Of a stretch of 64,000 nt of DNA, positions 17,297 to 33,508 are shown piece after piece. A model generated the notes under the pieces. That model had not been told where the DNA came from, made no database searches, and was given only the letters and a program-made list of their open reading frames with translations. A program made the translations under genes and the position numbers. The DNA comes from Obrimoposthia wandeli (taxonomy: Eukaryota): NCBI GenBank assembly GCA_977020255.1, contig CDROCS010002469.1:248001-312000 (forward strand). Direction: 5' to 3'. Every line of letters starts with the position of its first letter. The stretch's first letter is position 1.

Positions 17297-18484
17297 TTAC
17301 CGACAAATGCGATTACGCCCTTGCTCTTTCGCTTTATACAATGCTATGTCAGCTGCTTTAAGTGGGCTAGTTTTCGTTCTAGTGGTAGCTACTCCACCAC
17401 TAATGGTAACAGATACTGTTTCGCCATTACCGCCGACGCCACGCTGATTACGCCCTTTTTTATTATTCTTAGTACGTTTTTTAGCACGCACTCTTAAAGT
17501 AGCCTGCTCTACTGCTAAGCGCACTTGCTCAAGGGATTCTTCTGCCATCTCTGTATCAATGGTCGGAAACAAAATACAAAACTCTTCTCCTCCATAGCGA
17601 TATGCCGTGCCACCTTTCACTTGGTTGATTTTCTGTGCCACCATACGCAATACTTGATCACCCACATCATGGCCATGTGTATCATTGAATTTCTTGAAAA
17701 AATCAATATCGAGCATGGCCGCCGTATAGTTTTTACCCAGCTTTACCATGCGCTCGTTTAGTGCTCTTCGCCCTGGAATCCCCGTTAGCTCATCGATATA
17801 AGCCATACTTAAAGAGCGTTTAAATAAGGCCATCACCAGCAACAACTGATTTAAAGCAACTAGTAAACTGAGCTCTATTTCATTCGCTGGTGGGAAAACT
17901 AACAACCAAGCTGAAAACACTAAACTGATTAACAAATAAGCATCAATTAATAAAGTTTGTACGAATAACTTAATCACTAAGTACAAAAAGCAAACACTAA
18001 ACACGGCCAGTGCCGGTATCGAAACGTTAATGCCCTGCACTGCAATATGCGGCCAATTGATAAGCTGATGAAATTCATCTGCTTTGAAAACGTAAGCTAC
18101 TGCTAGCAGCCCAGGTTGCCCAAAAATAAGCACGATGCGAAACAGCCCAGTAATACTGTATGTGCCGCGCTCTTTATAGAAAGCAATGAGCAACATATTA
18201 AGTGACATTAAGACCAGTGCTAATTGAATATAATGTGGGTTGGCAAAATCAAGCTTCAAAAACGTCCACACGGAAAGACTAACTAAACCGGCAAACAAAA
18301 TACGGCTGAAGTTAAAAAAACCAACAATTACAAATAGTAACCCACTGATAGCCAATGGTACCCAAGGAATAAAGTACTGCCACTGTTGTGGGATTAAATG
18401 ACTAAAAGGAAGTGAGTAAATAGCAGCGGCTATAAAAAGTATTGGCAAAAATAGTAAATTAATGGGCCTTATAAAATCAGACAC
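17297..18484 (-). CDS. Membrane-bound diguanylate cyclase (GGDEF)
   Basis: Multi-TM N-terminus; DELTGIPGRR, MLDIDFFKKFNDTHGH, RYGGEEF, ADIALYKAKEQGRN. Confidence 0.93.
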   Translation of the reverse strand: MSDFIRPINLLFLPILFIAAAIYSLPFSHLIPQQWQYFIPWVPLAISGLLFVIVGFFNFSRILFAGLVSLSVWTFLKLDFANPHYIQLALVLMSLNMLLIAFYKERGTYSITGLFRIVLIFGQPGLLAVAYVFKADEFHQLINWPHIAVQGINVSIPALAVFSVCFLYLVIKLFVQTLLIDAYLLISLVFSAWLLVFPPANEIELSLLVALNQLLLVMALFKRSLSMAYIDELTGIPGRRALNERMVKLGKNYTAAMLDIDFFKKFNDTHGHDVGDQVLRMVAQKINQVKGGTAYRYGGEEFCILFPTIDTEMAEESLEQVRLAVEQATLRVRAKKRTKNNKKGRNQRGVGGNGETVSVTISGGVATTRTKTSPLKAADIALYKAKEQGRNRICR

Positions 18485-23793: not shown

Positions 23794-24035
23794 TACATCA
23801 ATTTTTTAGATAACGGTATAAATAATTTTCACAATAAAATCCTATAAAGCGGCTGCTTAAGTCTCAATGTTGCTGCATCGTTTACATACAACTCTGCCCA
23901 CAACACTTGAACAAAGTAATTGATTACCTTATTAATCATATTTGAAACATTCAAGTTCTATCATTCATTAACTAGCTGCGCCATCATGCTAAACTTCAAC
24001 ATTCACTTCAAACCTAAATTTTGATAAGAGACACC

Positions 24036-26447
24036 ATGAAATTACGTATTTTGGGCTGTAATGGCGGAATAGGACATAAATTAAGGACTACTTCTTTTTT
24101 AGTTAATAACCGTGTATTACTTGACGCTGGAACAGGGGTCGGAGAATTGACACTTGATGAAATGTTATCGCTTCGTCATGTATTGTTAACACATGCCCAT
24201 TTAGACCACATTGCTGGTTTAGCGCTGATGTTTGCCAGTATTTATGAAAACATGCTCGAAGCTGTGACTATTTACGCGCCAGAAGATGTATTAGCCATCT
24301 TAAGAAAGCATTTATTTAATTGGCAACTTTGGCCTGACTTCAACCAACTACCTGATCAAGACAACGCTACTCTTAAGTTTCAAGCGGTTGAAGAAGACAC
24401 AACTATTACCATAACACCTGGCTTTACGATAACGCCTATTGCATTAAGTCACACCGTTAAAAGTGTTGCCTATATCATTGAGCATAATGATGTAAAACTC
24501 TGTTTTTGTGGTGATACAGGGCCCACAAATAAAATATGGCGAACCATTAATAATTTAGAAGGTGTAGACCATCTTATTATTGAAGCATCTTACCCTAATG
24601 AACAAGCTGACTTAGCGCAGCAATCGGGTCATTTCACACCAAAATTACTCGCGAGCGATCTCAATAAACTCAATCAAAAACCAAGTGTTCATATTCAACA
24701 CATGAAACCAGGTTATGAAGAGTGCCTCAGTTTACAATGTAAACAGGAATTACAAGGTTTCAACTTAAATATTTTAGCTCGATGTGACGTTGTTGAACTA
24801 GCAAAAGGTGGTCAATTCAGCATTATCAGTACAACAAAGGACTATAAGAATATTGAGCAAAACTTGTCAAAATTAACCGATATGGCGATCTCTTTATCGA
24901 CGGAACAAGACAATGACCTATTACTTGAAAAAATCCTCAACAGCGCCAAAGAAATAGCCAATTCTGATGGTGGCACAATTTACACAGTAAAAGATGAACA
25001 ATTTTTACAAATGGACATTGTGAAAAATGATTCTATGGGCATCTCTTTAGGAAAAAGTAATTCCAATAAATCCAACTTTGCTCCTCTGCCGCTTTATTTA
25101 GAGAATGGTGAGCCTAATAAGGAAAACGTGGTCACTTGTGCTATTCATGAAGATATCATCATTGATATTAAAGATCGTCATGCAGACAGCCATTATGATT
25201 TTAGCGGAGCGCAACGCTTTGATGAAAGTACAGGTTATAATTCTATATCTTTCTTAACCATCCCCATGAAAGATCACAAAGGAGACATGATTGGCGCCCT
25301 TCAACTAATCAATGCCCTAGATAGTAATGGTAAAGTTATTCCCTTTAGTCATCAAATATCGACCTTAATAAAGGCCTTAGCTTCACAGGCTGCTATTACA
25401 TTGACGAATAAGAACCTTATTGATGAACTTGAATTACTCTTTGAATCCTTCATCAAATTACTCGCGGGTTTAATCGACGAAAAATCACCTTATACGGGCG
25501 GTCATTGTCGTCGAGTCCCAGAGCTAACGATCATGCTTACAGAGGCAATCCATGCGACACCAAATGGGCCTTTAAAAGACTTCTATATGACAGAAGATGA
25601 TCGTTATGAGCTAAAAATAGCGGCTTGGCTACATGACTGTGGAAAAATCACTACCCCAGAGCATGTTGTTGACAAAGCCACTAAACTTGAAACTATTTTT
25701 GACCGTATTCACCTTATTGATGCTCGTTTTGAAACGATCAGGCGCGATCTGGAAATCTCACTTTTAAAACAGCAACTCACCGCTTCACAAAATAATGTAT
25801 CAGTCAGTAATGACATAATTGAGCACTACAAAAAATCACTCTCAAGAGTTTCTATCGATCAAGCCTTTATTCAACAGCATAACTCAGGCGGAGAATTTAT
25901 GACGGTAGAAAATCAAGATCAAGTCATAGAGATTGCAGAGCGCTATCAAATTACTGACTACCAAGGTGAAAAGAAGAGTATCTTATCTGCTGATGAAATT
26001 GAGAATATGCAAATTTCACGAGGCACTTTAAATGCTGCTGAGCGCGAAATAATCAATAAACATATCATCGTCACCATTGATATGCTAACAGCTCTTAAAC
26101 TACCTAAACACCTTAAAAACGTTCCCGAAATTGCCGGAGGTCATCACGAACGGATGGACGGAAAAGGCTATCCTTACGGCCTAACAAAAGACCAAATGTC
26201 AGTTCAAACGAGAGCAATGGGCATAGCTGATATTTTTGAAGCACTGACCGCTTCGGATCGACCCTATAAAGAAGCAAAAACTATCACTGATTCGTTAACG
26301 ATTATGAAGCGTATGAAAGATACGGGTCATATTGATGCTGATATTTTTGACATATTTGTCCGCAATGAAGTTTATTTAAAATATGCTGATAGATTTTTAA
26401 CTTCGCAACAAAATGATCAAGTCAACAAAGATGATTTTCTTGATTAG
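24036..26447 (+). CDS. Fusion of MBL-fold 3',5'-cyclic nucleotide phosphodiesterase, GAF and HD-GYP phosphodiesterase
   Basis: N-terminal LGCNGG, DAGTG, THAHLDH, GDTG, GHFTP; central GAF (DGGTIY, LTIPM, IGALQLIN); C-terminal TGGHCRRV, WLHDCGK, HHERMDGKGYP, DIFEALT, RPYK. Confidence 0.92.
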   Translation: MKLRILGCNGGIGHKLRTTSFLVNNRVLLDAGTGVGELTLDEMLSLRHVLLTHAHLDHIAGLALMFASIYENMLEAVTIYAPEDVLAILRKHLFNWQLWPDFNQLPDQDNATLKFQAVEEDTTITITPGFTITPIALSHTVKSVAYIIEHNDVKLCFCGDTGPTNKIWRTINNLEGVDHLIIEASYPNEQADLAQQSGHFTPKLLASDLNKLNQKPSVHIQHMKPGYEECLSLQCKQELQGFNLNILARCDVVELAKGGQFSIISTTKDYKNIEQNLSKLTDMAISLSTEQDNDLLLEKILNSAKEIANSDGGTIYTVKDEQFLQMDIVKNDSMGISLGKSNSNKSNFAPLPLYLENGEPNKENVVTCAIHEDIIIDIKDRHADSHYDFSGAQRFDESTGYNSISFLTIPMKDHKGDMIGALQLINALDSNGKVIPFSHQISTLIKALASQAAITLTNKNLIDELELLFESFIKLLAGLIDEKSPYTGGHCRRVPELTIMLTEAIHATPNGPLKDFYMTEDDRYELKIAAWLHDCGKITTPEHVVDKATKLETIFDRIHLIDARFETIRRDLEISLLKQQLTASQNNVSVSNDIIEHYKKSLSRVSIDQAFIQQHNSGGEFMTVENQDQVIEIAERYQITDYQGEKKSILSADEIENMQISRGTLNAAEREIINKHIIVTIDMLTALKLPKHLKNVPEIAGGHHERMDGKGYPYGLTKDQMSVQTRAMGIADIFEALTASDRPYKEAKTITDSLTIMKRMKDTGHIDADIFDIFVRNEVYLKYADRFLTSQQNDQVNKDDFLD

Positions 26448-26756
26448 CCTCAACAATGACACACGCCATGATTGACGTACTTGAACCGAAACCTGGAAAA
26501 CAGGCAGACGACCTAATAAAGACTATTAAACACTGAACTGGCAGCATTTACTTAGACCGAGAGGAACGCCATATTTTAAATGTCTTCTCGCAAGGGCTAT
26601 TCTTTTGCTAGCATCTGTTTGAATCAACAGCCTTCATCTGCAAACTCTTACATCCATTTTATTTACGGCGTATTTTCATAGCGGGGTAATCTTTTATACT
26701 GCTCTTCAAATCAGCTTGTCCATTCCCTCTTTTCGACAAAAATCAGCATCTGATAT

Positions 26757-27005
26757 CATTAATGTCCGGCTAAATTTTTGTTGTTCTTTAACTCATTGAT
26801 TTTACGTTAGCCACAAGTGTTATTCGTCTGAAAAAATCCAATTTACCATGCTAGAAAACCACAAATCAATGAGTAAAGAGCTTACACTTTTTAATCGGAC
26901 AGCAATGTTTACCACAAGTATTATTGGCCGAAAAATCCAATTAACAATGCTAGAAATCCACAAATCAATGAGTAAAGAGTTTAGGCTTTTTAACCGGCAG
27001 CAATG
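26757..27005 (-). repeat. Family A element (26757-26907) followed by a tandem partial copy (26912-27005)
   Basis: Both segments end in CACAAATCAATGAGTAAAGAG...TTTTTAA.CGG..CAGCAATG. Confidence 0.85.
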
Positions 27006-27193
27006 ATTTGATATAGCTAATTTATTACGTTTTAAATTCAAACTACCAGACCATGTACCTTGTATTTTTCATAGCAAACTCCGATTATTAGCGCCTTAGA
27101 ACTGCCAGCGTATAACAGCGTTTATATTTGGAGAAAGCGACTATTTGAATCGCTAAAGGCTTTCTCCTTAACAATTGATCAATCACTATGCAC

Positions 27194-29069: not shown

Positions 29070-31826
29070 TTGCAGTCTAATTTTACTAAAAGTAATAAAA
29101 AGATGTTATTTACGATCTTTATGCGATCTGTTTTAGCTGTTATCTCTCTTCTTTTGGCTTCTTTGTTTCTCAGTTTATTTGGGTTGAAGGAAGCTAATAG
29201 TCTTTTACTTCAGAATCAATTCACCCGTGCTGAAAAGGACGTATCAAATGAGCTGGTGATAATCGCAGTTGACGATGAAAGCTTAGCTTATCTAAATTCT
29301 TGGCCCTGGCCTAGAGGAGTCTACGCGAACGTTTTGGAGCAACTAGAACTGCATAATGTTCGTAGAGTAGCCTTCGATATTGACTTTAGTTCCTCATCTA
29401 ACTTTAAGCAGGACGTTTTATTTTCTCAATCTTTAGATGATGCAAAGTTTGATATTGCTCTAGGGGCATATGTTTCGAAACACCCAGAGACAGGAGGTTT
29501 TCGAGAGCATAATCCTATTCCTCTATTTGCAGAGCATGCAGTTGCAGCCAATGCGAATATTGAATTAAATAGCTTGGGTAGGGTTGAGCAATATTACGGG
29601 CTATTTAATAACAAGCAGCAAACTCTAGCAGCCTTCCTGGCTAATTTAGAAAAAGAGCGAGAAAGTCCGTATTTTATAGATTATAGCTATCCTTGGCAGA
29701 ATATACCGATGTACTCGGTGAAAGATCTATTGACAAAAAATGTTCCAATTGGAAGTCTGCAAAATAAAGACATACTGATAGGCTCTACAGCTATAGTACT
29801 AGGAGATAATTTTAATACGCTTTCTGGTAATACAATACCAGGCGTATATTTACATGGCCTTGCCTATGAAACGATTATTAAGGAACAGCAGTTTACTAAG
29901 CTTAGCCTTAAATTTATTGATTTTCTCTCCATATTAGTAGTTGTTTTTATTTCACTCGTATTTAATACACAAAAAACCATGCGTTTATTTGTCGTCACTC
30001 TGGCAGGCTACAGTGCAATTTTTTATACAGTAGCTTATCTTCATGTACACGAATATGTGATTTTTGAAGCAGCTAAGCTTCTTGTAAGCTTAGTATCTAG
30101 CTCTGTCGTCTTTTTTTGTTATGCATTTTATTTAAAAACCACCTCCTTTTACAAAGAAAAAAATAAGAAGAACTACCATAAAGCGATCTCCTCCAAGATT
30201 ATAAAAGGTAATGTAAATGCCATTTTTGTGGTAGATATTGCAGGTAATATTATTATCTCTAACGAAAAAGCTAAGAAAATGTTTCGTTTAAATGATAATG
30301 ATTCAAACTTATTTAAATTCTTTGAGCATGCTAAGGAGTTTATCCAAAAATATGATGCCGGTGATAAAGAACAGTTGAATTATCATAAACTACACCATTG
30401 TACAGAAGATACGTATTTAGACCTTGAAGTTTTTGTTAATAAAGTTTCGTTTGTTACTAGTCGATATCAAGGAATTATCGAAGAAAAACACGAACTGTAT
30501 AGTTTTATTATTATTGATGAAACAGAAAAAATTAAAGCGCTTGAGGATATGAACCAATCAAGGATTGAACTTCTGGATATTAAATTTAATGATCCCGTTG
30601 CAAAAATCTCAAATCGATTTAGCTTTGAAAACTATTTAACTAGTTTTATCGAAGAAGGAAATAGGCATAGCACAACAGTCATTCTATTAAGGTTAAATTC
30701 GCTGCAAGAAATAAACTATATTTATGGGAGACTTACTGGTAATAGTGTTCTTTACCATACGGCGCAACTGTTAGTGAGCGAAGCTGCTGGCAAAGCAAAA
30801 GTATTTAAGTTTTCCAGTGCAACATTTGCCTTAGTGTACACAAATCAAAACGAACCTACAGTTGAAAGAGAAATGCAGCGATTATATTTCCTGTTTACAA
30901 ATCCGCTGCAAATACAGAATCAAAATCTTCTTATTTCAGTATCGCTTGGGAGTTCTCTTTCTCCAATGCATGGGAGTGAGCCTCTGCAGATCATCTCCTA
31001 TGCAGAAGCCTCTCTTGACTATGCCCATACTAATCGGTTTATAAACTACTTTTTTTACGATGAACACACATTGATGAAGTCTAAACAGAGAGTAACATTG
31101 AAGCAAGAGCTTTACCGAGCCATCAAGCAACGAGAATTTGTTCTTTTCTATCAGCCTCAGCTCTGCTTGCAAAGTGATCGCGTAATCGGATTAGAAGGCC
31201 TGTTACGTTGGAAAGACCCAATTAAAGGTCTGCGTTATCCTAATGAATTCATTGGAGCGTTAGAAGATTTTGGTTTCATGGGGGAAATGGGACAACTAAT
31301 CATTGATATGGGATGTGAAGATGCAACTAAGTTACCTGATCGTATTAAAATTGCTATTAATGTATCCCCTGTACAGTTCTTAGAATCAGACTTAGAACAA
31401 TTGTGTATCACTAGCTTAGAAAAGTCGGGTCTGGAGCCTAGCAGATTAGAACTTGAGATTACTGAAAGTATGTTGATGGACGATATTGAGAATGTTTCAC
31501 GTGTTTTACATAAGATCAAAAAACTTGGTATTACTATCGCAATGGATGACTTTGGTACAGGCTACTCAAGCTTACAATATTTATCCCAGCTCCCGTTTGA
31601 TAAATTAAAAATTGACCGCTCATTCTCTAAAAACCTCCTGTCTAACTCACAAGCTAAAGACATCATGGTATCAATAATCCAATTAGGAAAAGCTGCAAGT
31701 AAAACAATTCTAGTTGAAGGTATTGAAAATCAAGAGACTGCGATTTTCCTTGCTGCGAACGGTTGCGATTTTGTCCAAGGTTATTTATACGGGAAGCCAA
31801 AACCTATCAGTGAATATTTATCATAA
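29070..31826 (+). CDS. CHASE2-TM-PAS-degenerate GGDEF-EAL c-di-GMP phosphodiesterase
   Basis: CHASE2 motifs IIAVDDESL, WPWPRGVY, AFDIDF, PGVYLHG; GGDEF site reads SSATF; EAL domain FYQPQ, EGLLRW, LEITES, DDFGTGYSSL, LKIDRSF, EGIE, QGYLYGKP; AGGAG RBS before TTG. Confidence 0.92.
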   Translation: MQSNFTKSNKKMLFTIFMRSVLAVISLLLASLFLSLFGLKEANSLLLQNQFTRAEKDVSNELVIIAVDDESLAYLNSWPWPRGVYANVLEQLELHNVRRVAFDIDFSSSSNFKQDVLFSQSLDDAKFDIALGAYVSKHPETGGFREHNPIPLFAEHAVAANANIELNSLGRVEQYYGLFNNKQQTLAAFLANLEKERESPYFIDYSYPWQNIPMYSVKDLLTKNVPIGSLQNKDILIGSTAIVLGDNFNTLSGNTIPGVYLHGLAYETIIKEQQFTKLSLKFIDFLSILVVVFISLVFNTQKTMRLFVVTLAGYSAIFYTVAYLHVHEYVIFEAAKLLVSLVSSSVVFFCYAFYLKTTSFYKEKNKKNYHKAISSKIIKGNVNAIFVVDIAGNIIISNEKAKKMFRLNDNDSNLFKFFEHAKEFIQKYDAGDKEQLNYHKLHHCTEDTYLDLEVFVNKVSFVTSRYQGIIEEKHELYSFIIIDETEKIKALEDMNQSRIELLDIKFNDPVAKISNRFSFENYLTSFIEEGNRHSTTVILLRLNSLQEINYIYGRLTGNSVLYHTAQLLVSEAAGKAKVFKFSSATFALVYTNQNEPTVEREMQRLYFLFTNPLQIQNQNLLISVSLGSSLSPMHGSEPLQIISYAEASLDYAHTNRFINYFFYDEHTLMKSKQRVTLKQELYRAIKQREFVLFYQPQLCLQSDRVIGLEGLLRWKDPIKGLRYPNEFIGALEDFGFMGEMGQLIIDMGCEDATKLPDRIKIAINVSPVQFLESDLEQLCITSLEKSGLEPSRLELEITESMLMDDIENVSRVLHKIKKLGITIAMDDFGTGYSSLQYLSQLPFDKLKIDRSFSKNLLSNSQAKDIMVSIIQLGKAASKTILVEGIENQETAIFLAANGCDFVQGYLYGKPKPISEYLS

Positions 31827-31972: not shown

Positions 31973-33508
31973 CTATTTGTTTTTGTTTTTGTTCGAATTA
32001 CTGCCACCTGCATTACTGTTTCCACTGTTGCTGCCTGCGTTGCTAGTTCCGCTATTACCACCTTCGTTGCTACTTCCGCTGCTACCAGCTGCATTGCTGT
32101 TTTCGCTGTTACCACCTGCGTTGCTACTTCCGTTGTTACCACCTGCGTTGCCACTTCCGCTGTTACCACCTGCATTGCTACTTCCGCCGTTGCCGCCTGC
32201 ATTGCTGTTTCCGCTGTTACCACCTGCATTGCTATTTCCGCTGTTACCACCTGCATTACTGTTTCCGCTGTTACCACCTGCATTACTGTTTCCGCTGTTG
32301 CCGCCTGCATTGCTGTTTCCGCTGTTACCGCCTGCATTGCTACTTCCGCTGTTACCACCTGCATTGCTACTTCCGCCGTTGCCGCCTGCATTGCTGTTTC
32401 CGCTGTTACCACCTGCATTGCTATTTCCGCTGTTGCCGCCTGCATTGCTATTTCCGCTGTTACCACCTGCATTACTGTTTCCGCTGTTGCCGCCTGCATT
32501 GCTGTTTCCGCTGTTACCACCTGCATTACTGTTTCCGCTGTTACCACCTGCATTACTGTTTCCGCTGTTACCACCTGCGTTGCTGTTTCCGCTGTTGCCG
32601 CCTGCATTGCTGTTTCCGCTGTTACCACCTGCGTTGTTTTTTCCGCTGTTTCCACCTGCGTTGTTGTTCCCGCTGTTTCCACCTTCGTTGTTGTTCCCGC
32701 TGTTTCCACCTGCGTTGTTGTTCCCGCTGTTTCCACCTTCGTTGTTGTTCCCGCTGTTTCCACCTCCGTTGTTGTTCCCGCTGTTTCCACCTCCGTTGCT
32801 ACTTCCATTGTTTCCGCTTTTACCACCTGCGTTGCTGTTTGAATTGTATTGTTCACTGCCCAGATTAGTAATTTCAATTTGATCAAGGTAAGTATCGGCT
32901 AAACTTTTAACATCACTTCCGAAGTATTGGTTTAAATTTTTAGCCTTCTGAACACTTGTTGCTTTTAAATCTGTTGAATTATTTAGAGAAACTGCGGTTT
33001 TTTCTCCAGCCTTTATACTAATAACAGATTTGCTTTCCTTACTCGATACTTTAACTAGTCCTTCAAAAACTTGGACAGAAAAAGAGGCATCAGATACTCC
33101 CGTAGCAAAAGTCGTACCTTTTACAAGGGCTGCTCCGAAACGTGATCTTACCTTGAAGTGGTTTTTAGTGCCTTTTTTAACCGAGAAAAGCACAGTGCCA
33201 AGTTTGTGGAAAAAGCTAGTAGATTCTTCTGTATTTAATCTATTTGGAAGAATGAGCTCGCTATTTGCTTCAACAATAAGCGACTCTTGATCTCTGATTA
33301 AAAAAGCTCGGCTCCTGTACTTTGTTTTTAATATATCGCCCGGGGATAGTGTGTCTCCAGCTGTGACAAGCTTTGCGAAATATCCAGGGCGCAAAATCGA
33401 GACCTTACCTTTGACTTCAACTATTTCCCAGTTTAATGATGACGCTGAAGTATGAGTGGCTGGGAAAAAAGCGAGCAGATATAAAACAATTAGTTTGATC
33501 CATTTCAT
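31973..33508 (-). CDS. Secreted FecR-domain protein with a long (A/G/E)GGNSGNSN repeat tail
   Basis: AGGAG RBS; signal-like MKWIKLIVLYLLAFFPATHTSA; FecR-like GDTLSPGDILKT, GTVLFSV, VKGTTF, VQVFEGLVKV; low-complexity tail. Confidence 0.85.
   Translation of the reverse strand: MKWIKLIVLYLLAFFPATHTSASSLNWEIVEVKGKVSILRPGYFAKLVTAGDTLSPGDILKTKYRSRAFLIRDQESLIVEANSELILPNRLNTEESTSFFHKLGTVLFSVKKGTKNHFKVRSRFGAALVKGTTFATGVSDASFSVQVFEGLVKVSSKESKSVISIKAGEKTAVSLNNSTDLKATSVQKAKNLNQYFGSDVKSLADTYLDQIEITNLGSEQYNSNSNAGGKSGNNGSSNGGGNSGNNNGGGNSGNNNEGGNSGNNNAGGNSGNNNEGGNSGNNNAGGNSGKNNAGGNSGNSNAGGNSGNSNAGGNSGNSNAGGNSGNSNAGGNSGNSNAGGNSGNSNAGGNSGNSNAGGNSGNSNAGGNSGNSNAGGNGGSSNAGGNSGSSNAGGNSGNSNAGGNSGNSNAGGNSGNSNAGGNSGNSNAGGNSGNSNAGGNGGSSNAGGNSGSGNAGGNNGSSNAGGNSENSNAAGSSGSSNEGGNSGTSNAGSNSGNSNAGGSNSNKNKNK
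32000..32840 (-). repeat. 27-bp coding tandem repeat, about 30 units
   Basis: Plus-strand unit CCACCTGCATTGCTGTTTCCGCTGTTA with synonymous and minor variants. Confidence 0.95.

Follow-up and report, generated by a model that had tools for sequence, protein, structure and literature searches.

In a 64,000-nucleotide (nt) stretch of DNA from the Obrimoposthia wandeli assembly GCA_977020255.1 (contig CDROCS010002469.1, positions 248,001 to 312,000 of the forward strand; hereafter the window), we identified a gene that encodes three signaling modules in one polypeptide of 803 amino acids (aa): a metallo-beta-lactamase (MBL) fold domain that is likely a class-II-type 3',5'-cyclic-nucleotide phosphodiesterase (PDE), a GAF domain, and an HD-GYP domain predicted to hydrolyze cyclic di-GMP (c-di-GMP). 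This three-module, single-chain gene is genuine, and its junction is not an artifact. Comparison with relatives that carry separate genes indicates that it arose by fusion of the neighboring MBL-PDE and GAF-HD-GYP genes of a conserved cyclase cassette. The best overall explanation, to which we assign a probability of about 0.6, is a signaling enzyme born by gene fusion that combines an MBL-PDE, a cyclic-nucleotide-sensing GAF domain and an HD-GYP domain, with a working model in which cAMP gates its activity.

Domain architecture

The frame runs uninterrupted from its ATG (Table 1), with an alternative TTG start at 24021. The ATG is backed by relatives, all full-length members of which start with MKLRILGC, and a weak Shine-Dalgarno sequence (AAGAGA) lies 6 nt upstream of it. 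No N occurs in the window, and the base composition stays even along the gene, with no break at the junction. Pfam recovers PDEase_II (PF02112, 71 bits against a cut-off of 23.7, covering profile positions 85-284 of 340 only) together with Lactamase_B_2 at residues 25-222, a GAF domain above threshold at residues 294-456, and an HD-GYP domain split in two, as HD (488-570) and HD_5 (653-770; 128 bits for HD_5).

An AlphaFold2 model built from a 91-row alignment (mean predicted local distance difference test score (pLDDT) 86.4; predicted template modeling score (pTM) 0.54) is reliable for the single domains and unreliable for their arrangement. It shows an alpha/beta sandwich at residues 1-255, a GAF fold at 271-438, a long helix at 439-483 and a helical HD-GYP domain, and confidence reaches its minimum at residues 265-272, with residues 269-271 below a pLDDT of 50. 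When the GAF-HD-GYP part was compared with the PDB using Foldseek, PmGH, the GAF-HD-GYP protein of Persephonella marina (4MCW/4MDZ/4ME4), ranked first (4mcw; E 1e-18, TM 0.70-0.76). PmGH shares with our protein the succession of GAF domain, long helix and HD-GYP domain, and the HD, HHE, GYP and RxxK motifs; it differs in having neither an MBL domain nor an insert of ~105 aa that we describe below.

These results bear out the sequence-only reading of this gene, which had proposed a continuous frame of about 800 aa with an MBL + GAF + HD-GYP architecture, intact HxHxDH, HD, HHE, GYP and RPYK motifs, and a long helical insertion in the HD domain. The frame comprises 803 codons, Pfam and the model recover the architecture, the motifs lie at verified coordinates and are invariant in relatives, and the insertion is seen in the AlphaFold2 model.

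The GAF domain belongs to the cyclic-nucleotide-binding subclass

We searched all PDB sequences with a GAF profile built from 16 family members and obtained 21 matches at E <= 0.01, every one of them a cyclic-nucleotide (cNMP)-type GAF, PmGH included. The top matches were PDE5 GAF-A (E 5e-23), CyaB2 (2e-20), PmGH (2e-15), PDE2A GAF-B (1e-11) and PDE10A (2e-10), followed by PDE6 and others; no phytochrome, NifA/FhlA, DosS or CodY-type GAF was among the 21. Because the profile matches are restricted to cyclic-nucleotide-type GAFs, we assign the domain by sequence to the cNMP-binding subclass. It carries a conserved DFSG...FD..TGY..S.LT.P motif, and of the NKFDE motif the F-D-E...TGY segment is present, with a spacing 4 residues off that of PDE5. 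Mammalian PDE2, PDE5 and PDE10 and cyanobacterial CyaB2 thus share this GAF subfamily (E 5e-23 to 2e-10) and differ in their class I PDE or cyclase catalytic domains, being otherwise unrelated. In PDE2, binding of one cyclic nucleotide to the GAF domain controls how another is hydrolyzed; the cross-talk between messengers that we propose here follows the same logic.

For the nucleotide itself, we turned to the class III cyclases encoded near the fused gene and its relatives. In these enzymes, a Lys/Asp or Lys/Thr (class IIIb) pair marks ATP as substrate, and a Glu/Cys-type pair marks GTP. The cyclase in the window has a Lys78...Asp138 pair (in 'KFIGD' and 'DVFGRHVNRASR'), and 33 CHASE2-cyclases of relatives have Lys...Thr. 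Since the linked cyclases carry ATP-type specificity residues, they are predicted to be adenylate cyclases, and cAMP is likelier than cGMP as ligand and substrate of the fused protein.

An alternative that we judge unlikely, while taking it seriously, is that the GAF domain senses cGMP or a non-nucleotide ligand, or that it regulates the MBL domain in the style of mammalian PDE2/5, instead of or besides the HD-GYP domain. The top structure match of the GAF domain is the cGMP-binding PDE5 GAF-A, the ligand of the PmGH GAF domain was never identified (10.1101/2021.11.05.467447), and in the fused protein the GAF domain sits between both catalytic domains. Set against this, split relatives always have the GAF domain on the HD-GYP polypeptide, connected by the long helix, and all 35 of the 35 linked cyclases scored have Lys in the first position and Asp or Thr in the second, not the Glu/Cys-type guanylate pair. 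A functional precedent for a cNMP-type GAF domain gating an HD-GYP domain is Tlr0485 of Thermosynechococcus vulcanus, a GAF-HD-GYP protein whose c-di-GMP phosphodiesterase activity is activated by cAMP (Enomoto et al, 2020, as given in Table 5 of PMC8846402; 10.1101/2021.11.05.467447); it has no fused cAMP phosphodiesterase. Gating of cyclic-dinucleotide hydrolysis by a cyclic nucleotide bound to the GAF domain, which the sequence-only reading had proposed for cAMP or cGMP, is plausible and has this precedent, and control of both catalytic domains by the single GAF domain is a possibility.

The MBL domain resembles class II phosphodiesterases

In an alignment of 39-42 homologs, the MBL ligands D30, H53, H55, D57, H58, H139, D160, H199 and H222 are invariant, as is the block F94-N95...W99-P100-D101-F102. 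The best PDB sequence match of the domain is yeast PDE1 (4ojv, E 5e-9), in which 'HVFNDLIWPDL' aligns to HLFNWQLWPDF (residues 92-102) of our protein; RNase Z sequences in the PDB match more weakly and do not span the FN...WPDF block. The likeness to class II PDEs, a PF02112 family that includes Vibrio fischeri CpdP and Dictyostelium PdsA, thus extends over the MBL fold, the HxHLDH motif, the H-x-FN-xxx-WPD motif and a passing Pfam gathering score. Yeast PDE1 is longer (369 aa versus 255 aa for the domain here), the two are ~19-20% identical in structural alignment, and the domain here is cytoplasmic and fused. We predict a class-II-type PDE that likely hydrolyzes cAMP. The case for cAMP or cGMP as substrate is circumstantial and comes from gene linkage to adenylate cyclases and cNMP-binding proteins.

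It is rather improbable, in our estimate, that the MBL domain is not a cAMP/cGMP PDE and instead acts on pGpG, on RNA in the manner of RNase Z, or, like Apyc1, on other cyclic (oligo)nucleotides; in the pGpG-to-GMP variant, the fusion would be a two-step degradation line rather than a cross-talk device. Foldseek places the N-terminal domain equally close, all at about 1e-11, to an ElaC homolog (1zkp), RNase Z (1y44), YhfI (6kns), PDE1 (4ojv) and Apyc1 (7u2r/7u2s), and the top NCBIfam match is the RNase Z/ElaC equivalog TIGR02651. That match reaches 80.6 bits against a cut-off of 293, however, and although the RNase Z/ElaC fold is like that of our MBL domain, the domain here has only 255 aa. 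The weak Pfam match to Apyc1 (PF23023) scores 13 bits against a threshold of 50, which leaves a structural likeness only, and nothing in the NCBIfam scan was above cut-offs; PF02112, in contrast, passes. The closest PDB sequence, yeast PDE1, shares the H-x-FN-xxx-WPD motif, linkage to adenylate cyclases and cNMP-binding proteins is persistent, and in many loci the MBL gene adjoins the cyclase gene and lies 2.4-4 kb from the HD-GYP gene. These points favor a cyclic-nucleotide PDE over the other substrates.

The HD-GYP domain is predicted to hydrolyze c-di-GMP and carries a conserved insert

The HD-GYP domain matches PmGH (4mcw, E 1e-28) and the Vibrio cholerae protein V-cGAP3 (5z7c, E 3e-20) among PDB sequences. 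Across 61 homologs, H490, H533, D534, H676, H703/H704/E705, G711-Y712-P713, D732, R742 and K745 are invariant, and H490 and H533-D534 align to the HD region of PmGH. The segment HHERMDGKGYP (residues 703-713) conforms to the HHExxDGxGYP consensus and is followed by the Asp ligand D732 downstream. RPYK (residues 742-745), invariant in the 61 relatives, conforms to the Rxx(K/R) motif for guanine recognition. An Rxx(K/R) motif marks recognition of c-di-GMP, and Rxx(Q/N) marks recognition of cyclic GMP-AMP (cGAMP) (10.1101/600031); by its sequence, RPYK is thus the canonical c-di-GMP signature and not the cGAMP-specific one. We conclude that the domain is likely a c-di-GMP phosphodiesterase.

The metal center probably differs from that of PmGH. 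The PmGH segment 'DPETQNH' aligns to 'KSPYTGGH' here, which places Tyr486 at the position of the third-metal Glu, as in V-cGAP3. Because the position of the PmGH third-iron ligand, which we take to be E185, is occupied by Tyr486, the alignment points to a binuclear rather than a trinuclear center.

The domain is interrupted at residues 555-660 by a family-specific insert of ~105 aa, which lies between 'VVDKATKLET' and 'ISRGTLNAAE' at a point where PmGH and V-cGAP3 run on without a break. The insert is mostly helical in the AlphaFold2 model, with helices at residues 555-585, 592-614 and 624-636, a small hairpin, and a helix at 652-658. It holds a conserved NxGGEFM motif (616-622), and its invariant residues include N616, G618, E620, M622, R564, E566, E654 and N657. 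The insert is common to a whole large subfamily of GAF-HD-GYP proteins of 530-550 aa, with at least 8,000 candidates, all significant.

That the HD-GYP domain is dead, or specific for 3'3'-cGAMP instead of c-di-GMP, appears quite improbable to us. V-cGAP3, which shares the HD-GYP core and a KSPYT(A/G)GH motif with our protein and differs in having tandem HD-GYP-like modules and no GAF domain, MBL domain or insert, is a 3'3'-cGAMP phosphodiesterase, and the replacement of the third-metal Glu by Tyr486 and the large insert at a site contiguous in PmGH and V-cGAP3 could both be read in the same direction. Yet the HD, HHE, GYP and Asp ligands are all invariant in our family, and the gene island in the window and the related cassettes hold the c-di-GMP components GGDEF-EAL and MshEN. 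Hydrolysis of c-di-GMP accordingly stays our prediction for this domain.

At the DNA level, ~34 nt encoding HHERMDGKGYP (26141-26174) alone matched several unrelated metagenome contigs. Conservation of the DNA that encodes this motif reaches far outside the family, and read or contig searches can return spurious short matches to it.

Origin of the gene by fusion of adjacent genes

With a word-index protein search, we recovered another nine proteins of 803 aa that share the architecture at 66-95% identity, drawn from separate JGI, ENA, NCBI and Logan assemblies. We also aligned Logan assembled contigs to positions 23800-26600 of the window and found the linker spanned by contigs from three separate ice-metagenome studies, with zero coding indels: a single 2768-nt contig of ~93% identity covers 23808-26271 (run X2), and further contigs span 24126-25388 (run X3) and 24713-24899 (run X5). 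A database protein of 536 aa and 87% identity (P0010), considered as an unfused homolog, was rejected, as it begins at an internal Met and its locus holds the same frame of 808 codons. The locus in question (L001:5185-7611) is from 'Osedax' symbiont bacterium Rs2_46_30_T18; its NCBI record calls the 536-aa protein only and misses the MBL domain, and the actual ORF is the full 803/808-codon fusion. With nine further 803-aa proteins, contigs that bridge the linker, and the 536-aa entry explained as annotation, the junction is real. A single frame produced by an assembly or sequencing error, through a lost stop or a frameshift between two genes, might have been suspected from the close relatives with two separate genes in different frames and from the 536-aa entry, but we dismiss it, since that entry reflects internal-start annotation, the 803-aa proteins come from about ten independent assemblies, contigs of three studies cross the junction without indels, and the linker is conserved inside the window's clade.

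Among relatives that are truly unfused, the nearest are proteins of 536 aa and 66-71% identity from marine metagenomes. They are encoded in a split operon (L002:2902-9834), in which an MBL-PDE gene (256 aa) is followed after 32 nt by the GAF-HD-GYP gene, after a further 15 nt by a CHASE2-class III cyclase gene, and then by a ShlB-type transporter gene; a gene for a GAF-MshEN-T2SSE ATPase is divergently transcribed upstream. The MBL half of our protein is 57% identical to the separate MBL protein of this split lineage and 34-43% identical to all others. Because the MBL half is nearest to the MBL gene of the same lineage, both halves appear to share one history.

The site of fusion can be read from the same comparison. 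In the split genes, the first protein ends '...VKGQVLTLN*' and the second restarts 'MSNKNIEQHL...' in a different frame; in the window, the junction reads '...RCDVVEL-AKGGQFSIISTTKDY-KNIEQNL...', and a 45-nt linker takes the place of 44 nt (the stop, the 32-nt spacer and the first three codons) in the split operon. These lengths fit fusion by loss of the stop codon and a 1-nt adjustment of the frame, a route that we infer from the two layouts.

The fusion recurs in separate lineages

We searched for further fusions with query words limited to the MBL part and the whole-protein length filter kept. This search returned 16 clusters, which include the window's clade, Leeia oryzae, Thiomicrospira sp. 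(792 aa), Sulfuricurvum sp. (796 aa) and two metagenomic proteins of 782 and 638 aa; the word-index protein search added a second fused protein from Leeia sp. The candidate Acidovorax fusion (L024) was dropped, as it was an artifact of stop-to-stop ORF extension in a high-GC genome and has no MBL match. Fused proteins are already present in NCBI and UniRef, under such generic names as 'HD domain-containing phosphohydrolase', 'GAF domain-containing protein' and 'MBL fold metallo-hydrolase'.

In an IQ-TREE phylogeny of the GAF-HD-GYP part, the marine fused sequences of the window's group and 18 unfused marine sequences form one clade with 100% support, and Leeia lies far from it, among unfused beta/gamma sequences. 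A single origin of the fusions of the window's clade and Leeia (13 rows) was rejected by 158 log-likelihood units (p-AU 8e-6); for the 11 marine fused rows, grouping in one clade was not rejected (p 0.87). Once the additional fusions are included in the tree, at least three changes of the fusion label are required; long branches make the placement of the Thiomicrospira/Sulfuricurvum group less sure. Linker length and sequence differ among the fused lineages. The fusion by this analysis recurs in at least three labeled clades, and independent origin was tested for the window's clade versus Leeia.

In every fused lineage examined, a cyclase gene lies within about 3 kb. The stop codon of the Leeia CHASE2-cyclase gene overlaps the start of the fused gene, the gene order in Thiomicrospira (L091) is FecR, TPR, CHASE2-cyclase and fused gene, and that in Sulfuricurvum (L090) is fused gene, TPR, FecR and CHASE2-cyclase.

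The sequence-only reading had anticipated much of this: it described MBL-PDE and GAF-HD-GYP genes as frequent neighbors, and we find them adjacent in split relatives and linked in the wider family; it marked the junction as a point to confirm in reads, and contigs of three independent metagenome runs bridge it; and it cautioned that similar fusions exist elsewhere, as those of Leeia, Thiomicrospira and Sulfuricurvum now demonstrate.

Two further proteins from the MBL-part search deserve mention beside these fusions. A 478-aa protein on an ENA contig of 24,978 nt (P0014; 75-76% identity) has only the MBL and GAF domains; it may represent a genuine shorter form without the HD-GYP domain, or else an allele altered by truncation or a frameshift. 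The other is a 523-aa class III cyclase::MBL-PDE protein at L093:7001-8572, adjacent to genes for MshEN-T2SSE, GAF-HD-GYP and pilin proteins; as its neighbors look split, the apparent fusion may stem from a frameshift in the assembly, and we do not rely on it.

A conserved cassette in split relatives

We scanned one genome per GTDB species and found at least 80 loci at 50-55% identity. Those listed are mostly from Burkholderiales, Rhodocyclaceae, Methylophilaceae and Gallionellaceae, with some gamma-proteobacteria, and none of the 80 is fused among the matches listed at this identity, a range that lies outside the window's own species. Sixty of the listed loci extend at least 4.5 kb upstream; of these, 36 have an MBL-PDE gene and 31 a CHASE2-cyclase gene, and in 28 both are on the same strand. 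The gene order in the listed loci is cyclase, MBL-PDE, then an interval of 2.4-2.7 kb or 3.5-4.2 kb, then GAF-HD-GYP. The interval encodes a GAF-MshEN-T2SSE (PilB/GspE-like) ATPase, and the longer gaps add a cNMP_binding-rhodanese protein. One locus annotated in full, from Candidatus Desulfobacillus (L092:1-13205), comprises genes for a CHASE2-Ser/Thr kinase, PP2C, FHA, CHASE2-cyclase and MBL-PDE, followed by cNMP_binding-rhodanese, GAF-MshEN-T2SSE, GAF-HD-GYP, pilin and FimB. With this content, the cassette looks like a unit through which cAMP and c-di-GMP control a type IV pilus. It is widely spread over beta- and gamma-proteobacteria, and its beta-proteobacterial form adds the cNMP-binding-rhodanese protein, the PilB-like ATPase and the pilin to the cyclase, MBL-PDE and GAF-HD-GYP genes; further loci are L075:570-7602, L052:2-7599 and the split operon described above.

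A model for cAMP-gated c-di-GMP hydrolysis

In our working model, the adjacent cyclase would make cAMP, which would bind the GAF domain; the long helix would pass the signal on and switch on the HD-GYP domain for c-di-GMP hydrolysis, as in Tlr0485; and the tethered MBL domain would hydrolyze cAMP, making the c-di-GMP-lowering signal local and self-terminating. Fusion would fix the two activities at a 1:1 stoichiometry, with a single chain that combines a domain to erase one messenger, a sensor, and a domain to erase the other.

Direct wiring of cAMP to c-di-GMP is known from few enzymes, namely Bd1971, Lcd1 and Tlr0485. In Bd1971 (a Bdellovibrio cNMP-binding-EAL protein) and Lcd1 (a Leptospira GAF-GGDEF protein), cAMP/cGMP directly controls c-di-GMP turnover within one polypeptide (PMC8846402). 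Both differ from our protein in their sensor and/or catalytic domains, and neither has a cNMP-degrading domain of its own. In their census of HD-GYP proteins, Galperin and Chou count GAF-HD-GYP among the common families, and the main text makes no mention of an MBL or class II PDE fusion. In our literature searches, no paper turned up on fusion of an MBL or class II PDE domain to HD-GYP, and none describing the cassette (CHASE2/MshEN/GAF). Every module, and the principle of cross-talk, is already known; new are the predicted tethered cAMP eraser, the recurrent fusion, the insert-bearing HD-GYP subfamily, and the conserved cassette of cyclase, MBL-PDE, PilB-like ATPase, GAF-HD-GYP and pilin genes.

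Several observations weigh against the reading of a cAMP-gated three-module enzyme. The GAF sequence does not tell which nucleotide binds, and the MBL fold alone cannot separate cNMP PDEs from enzymes of the RNase Z/YhfI/PhnP type; the NCBIfam equivalog for cyclic nucleotide-degrading phosphodiesterases (NF041851), at 37 bits against 400, fails its cut-off, as RNase Z and Apyc1 do theirs. The insert (residues 550-665) has no match in Pfam or among PDB sequences, and the domain arrangement in the AlphaFold2 model is, as noted, unreliable. The cyclase in the window lies on the opposite strand and lacks CHASE2, which makes its functional coupling a matter of proximity only. Among the sequencing runs searched, no RNA run contained the locus.

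A more specific version, which we put forward tentatively and regard as doubtful, is a self-resetting dual-messenger switch in which one cAMP pool is both the activator at the GAF domain and the substrate of the MBL domain, such that each cAMP burst would cause a brief, local drop in c-di-GMP, with the split proteins forming a complex that serves as a cAMP-to-c-di-GMP relay controlling type IV pili. If this is true, the repeated independent fusions would mean that in a widespread cassette, too, the split MBL-PDE and GAF-HD-GYP proteins form a physical complex, and that type IV pili are under the control of a previously undescribed relay. Fusion that recurs independently is Rosetta-stone evidence for a joint action of the separate MBL-PDE and GAF-HD-GYP genes, and the fused form would be a handy single-protein entry point to the biochemistry of the relay. 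Our analysis also flags a large, uncharacterized HD-GYP subfamily with the conserved insert.

Genomic neighborhood of the fused gene

Downstream of the fused gene lies a convergent class III cyclase gene, whose product is the probable source of the cyclic nucleotide. The layout of this cyclase is unusual, with an N-terminal catalytic domain (residues 25-198), one transmembrane helix (~residues 222-245) and a C-terminal part of ~200 aa that has no Pfam match and is presumably extracytoplasmic. The 450-aa cyclase is also the neighbor on an orthologous contig (L005).

Table 1. Coordinates in the window of the fused gene, its domains and motifs, and neighboring genes.
Feature	Residues	Coordinates	Strand	Basis
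Whole coding sequence, MBL-PDE :: GAF :: HD-GYP	803 aa + stop	24036..26447	+	ORF, Pfam, relatives
MBL-fold domain, predicted class-II-type cyclic-nucleotide phosphodiesterase	1-255	24036..24800	+	Pfam, PDB sequence match, Foldseek
HAHLDH metal-binding motif	53-58	24192..24209	+	verified coordinates, invariant
Fusion linker AKGGQFSIISTTKDY, low pLDDT	256-270	24801..24845	+	model, split-gene comparison, contigs
GAF domain, cyclic-nucleotide-binding type	271-438	24846..25349	+	Pfam, GAF profile
Long signaling helix from GAF to HD-GYP	439-483	25350..25484	+	AlphaFold2 model; layout as in PmGH
HD-GYP domain, predicted phosphodiesterase	484-803	25485..26444	+	Pfam HD_5, PmGH/V-cGAP3 matches, Foldseek
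HD motif	533-534	25632-25637	+	verified coordinates
Family-specific ~105-aa insert in HD-GYP	555-660	25698..26015	+	AlphaFold2 model, alignments
HHERMDGKGYP motif	703-713	26142-26174	+	verified coordinates
RPYK motif	742-745	26259-26270	+	verified coordinates
Class III nucleotidyl cyclase, convergent neighbor	450 aa	27194..28546	-	PF00211 E 8e-22
CHASE2-GGDEF-EAL protein, c-di-GMP turnover		29070..31826	+	same island
FecR-domain protein		31973..33508	-	same island
GGDEF protein		17297-18484		

GAF-MshEN-T2SSE ATPase and cNMP-binding-rhodanese genes were not found in the 64-kb window, where their sequences gave GAF-to-GAF similarity only. FecR genes, one of which lies in the island, occur as well with the CHASE2-cyclases that neighbor the fused gene in Thiomicrospira and Sulfuricurvum, which suggests a conserved partnership of FecR with CHASE2.

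The 750-nt gap between the PDE gene and the cyclase gene contains a 67-nt direct repeat in two copies that are 90% identical and spaced by 99 nt (26832-26997). Because of these repeats, a small ORF on the minus strand (26820-27041) is internally repeated.

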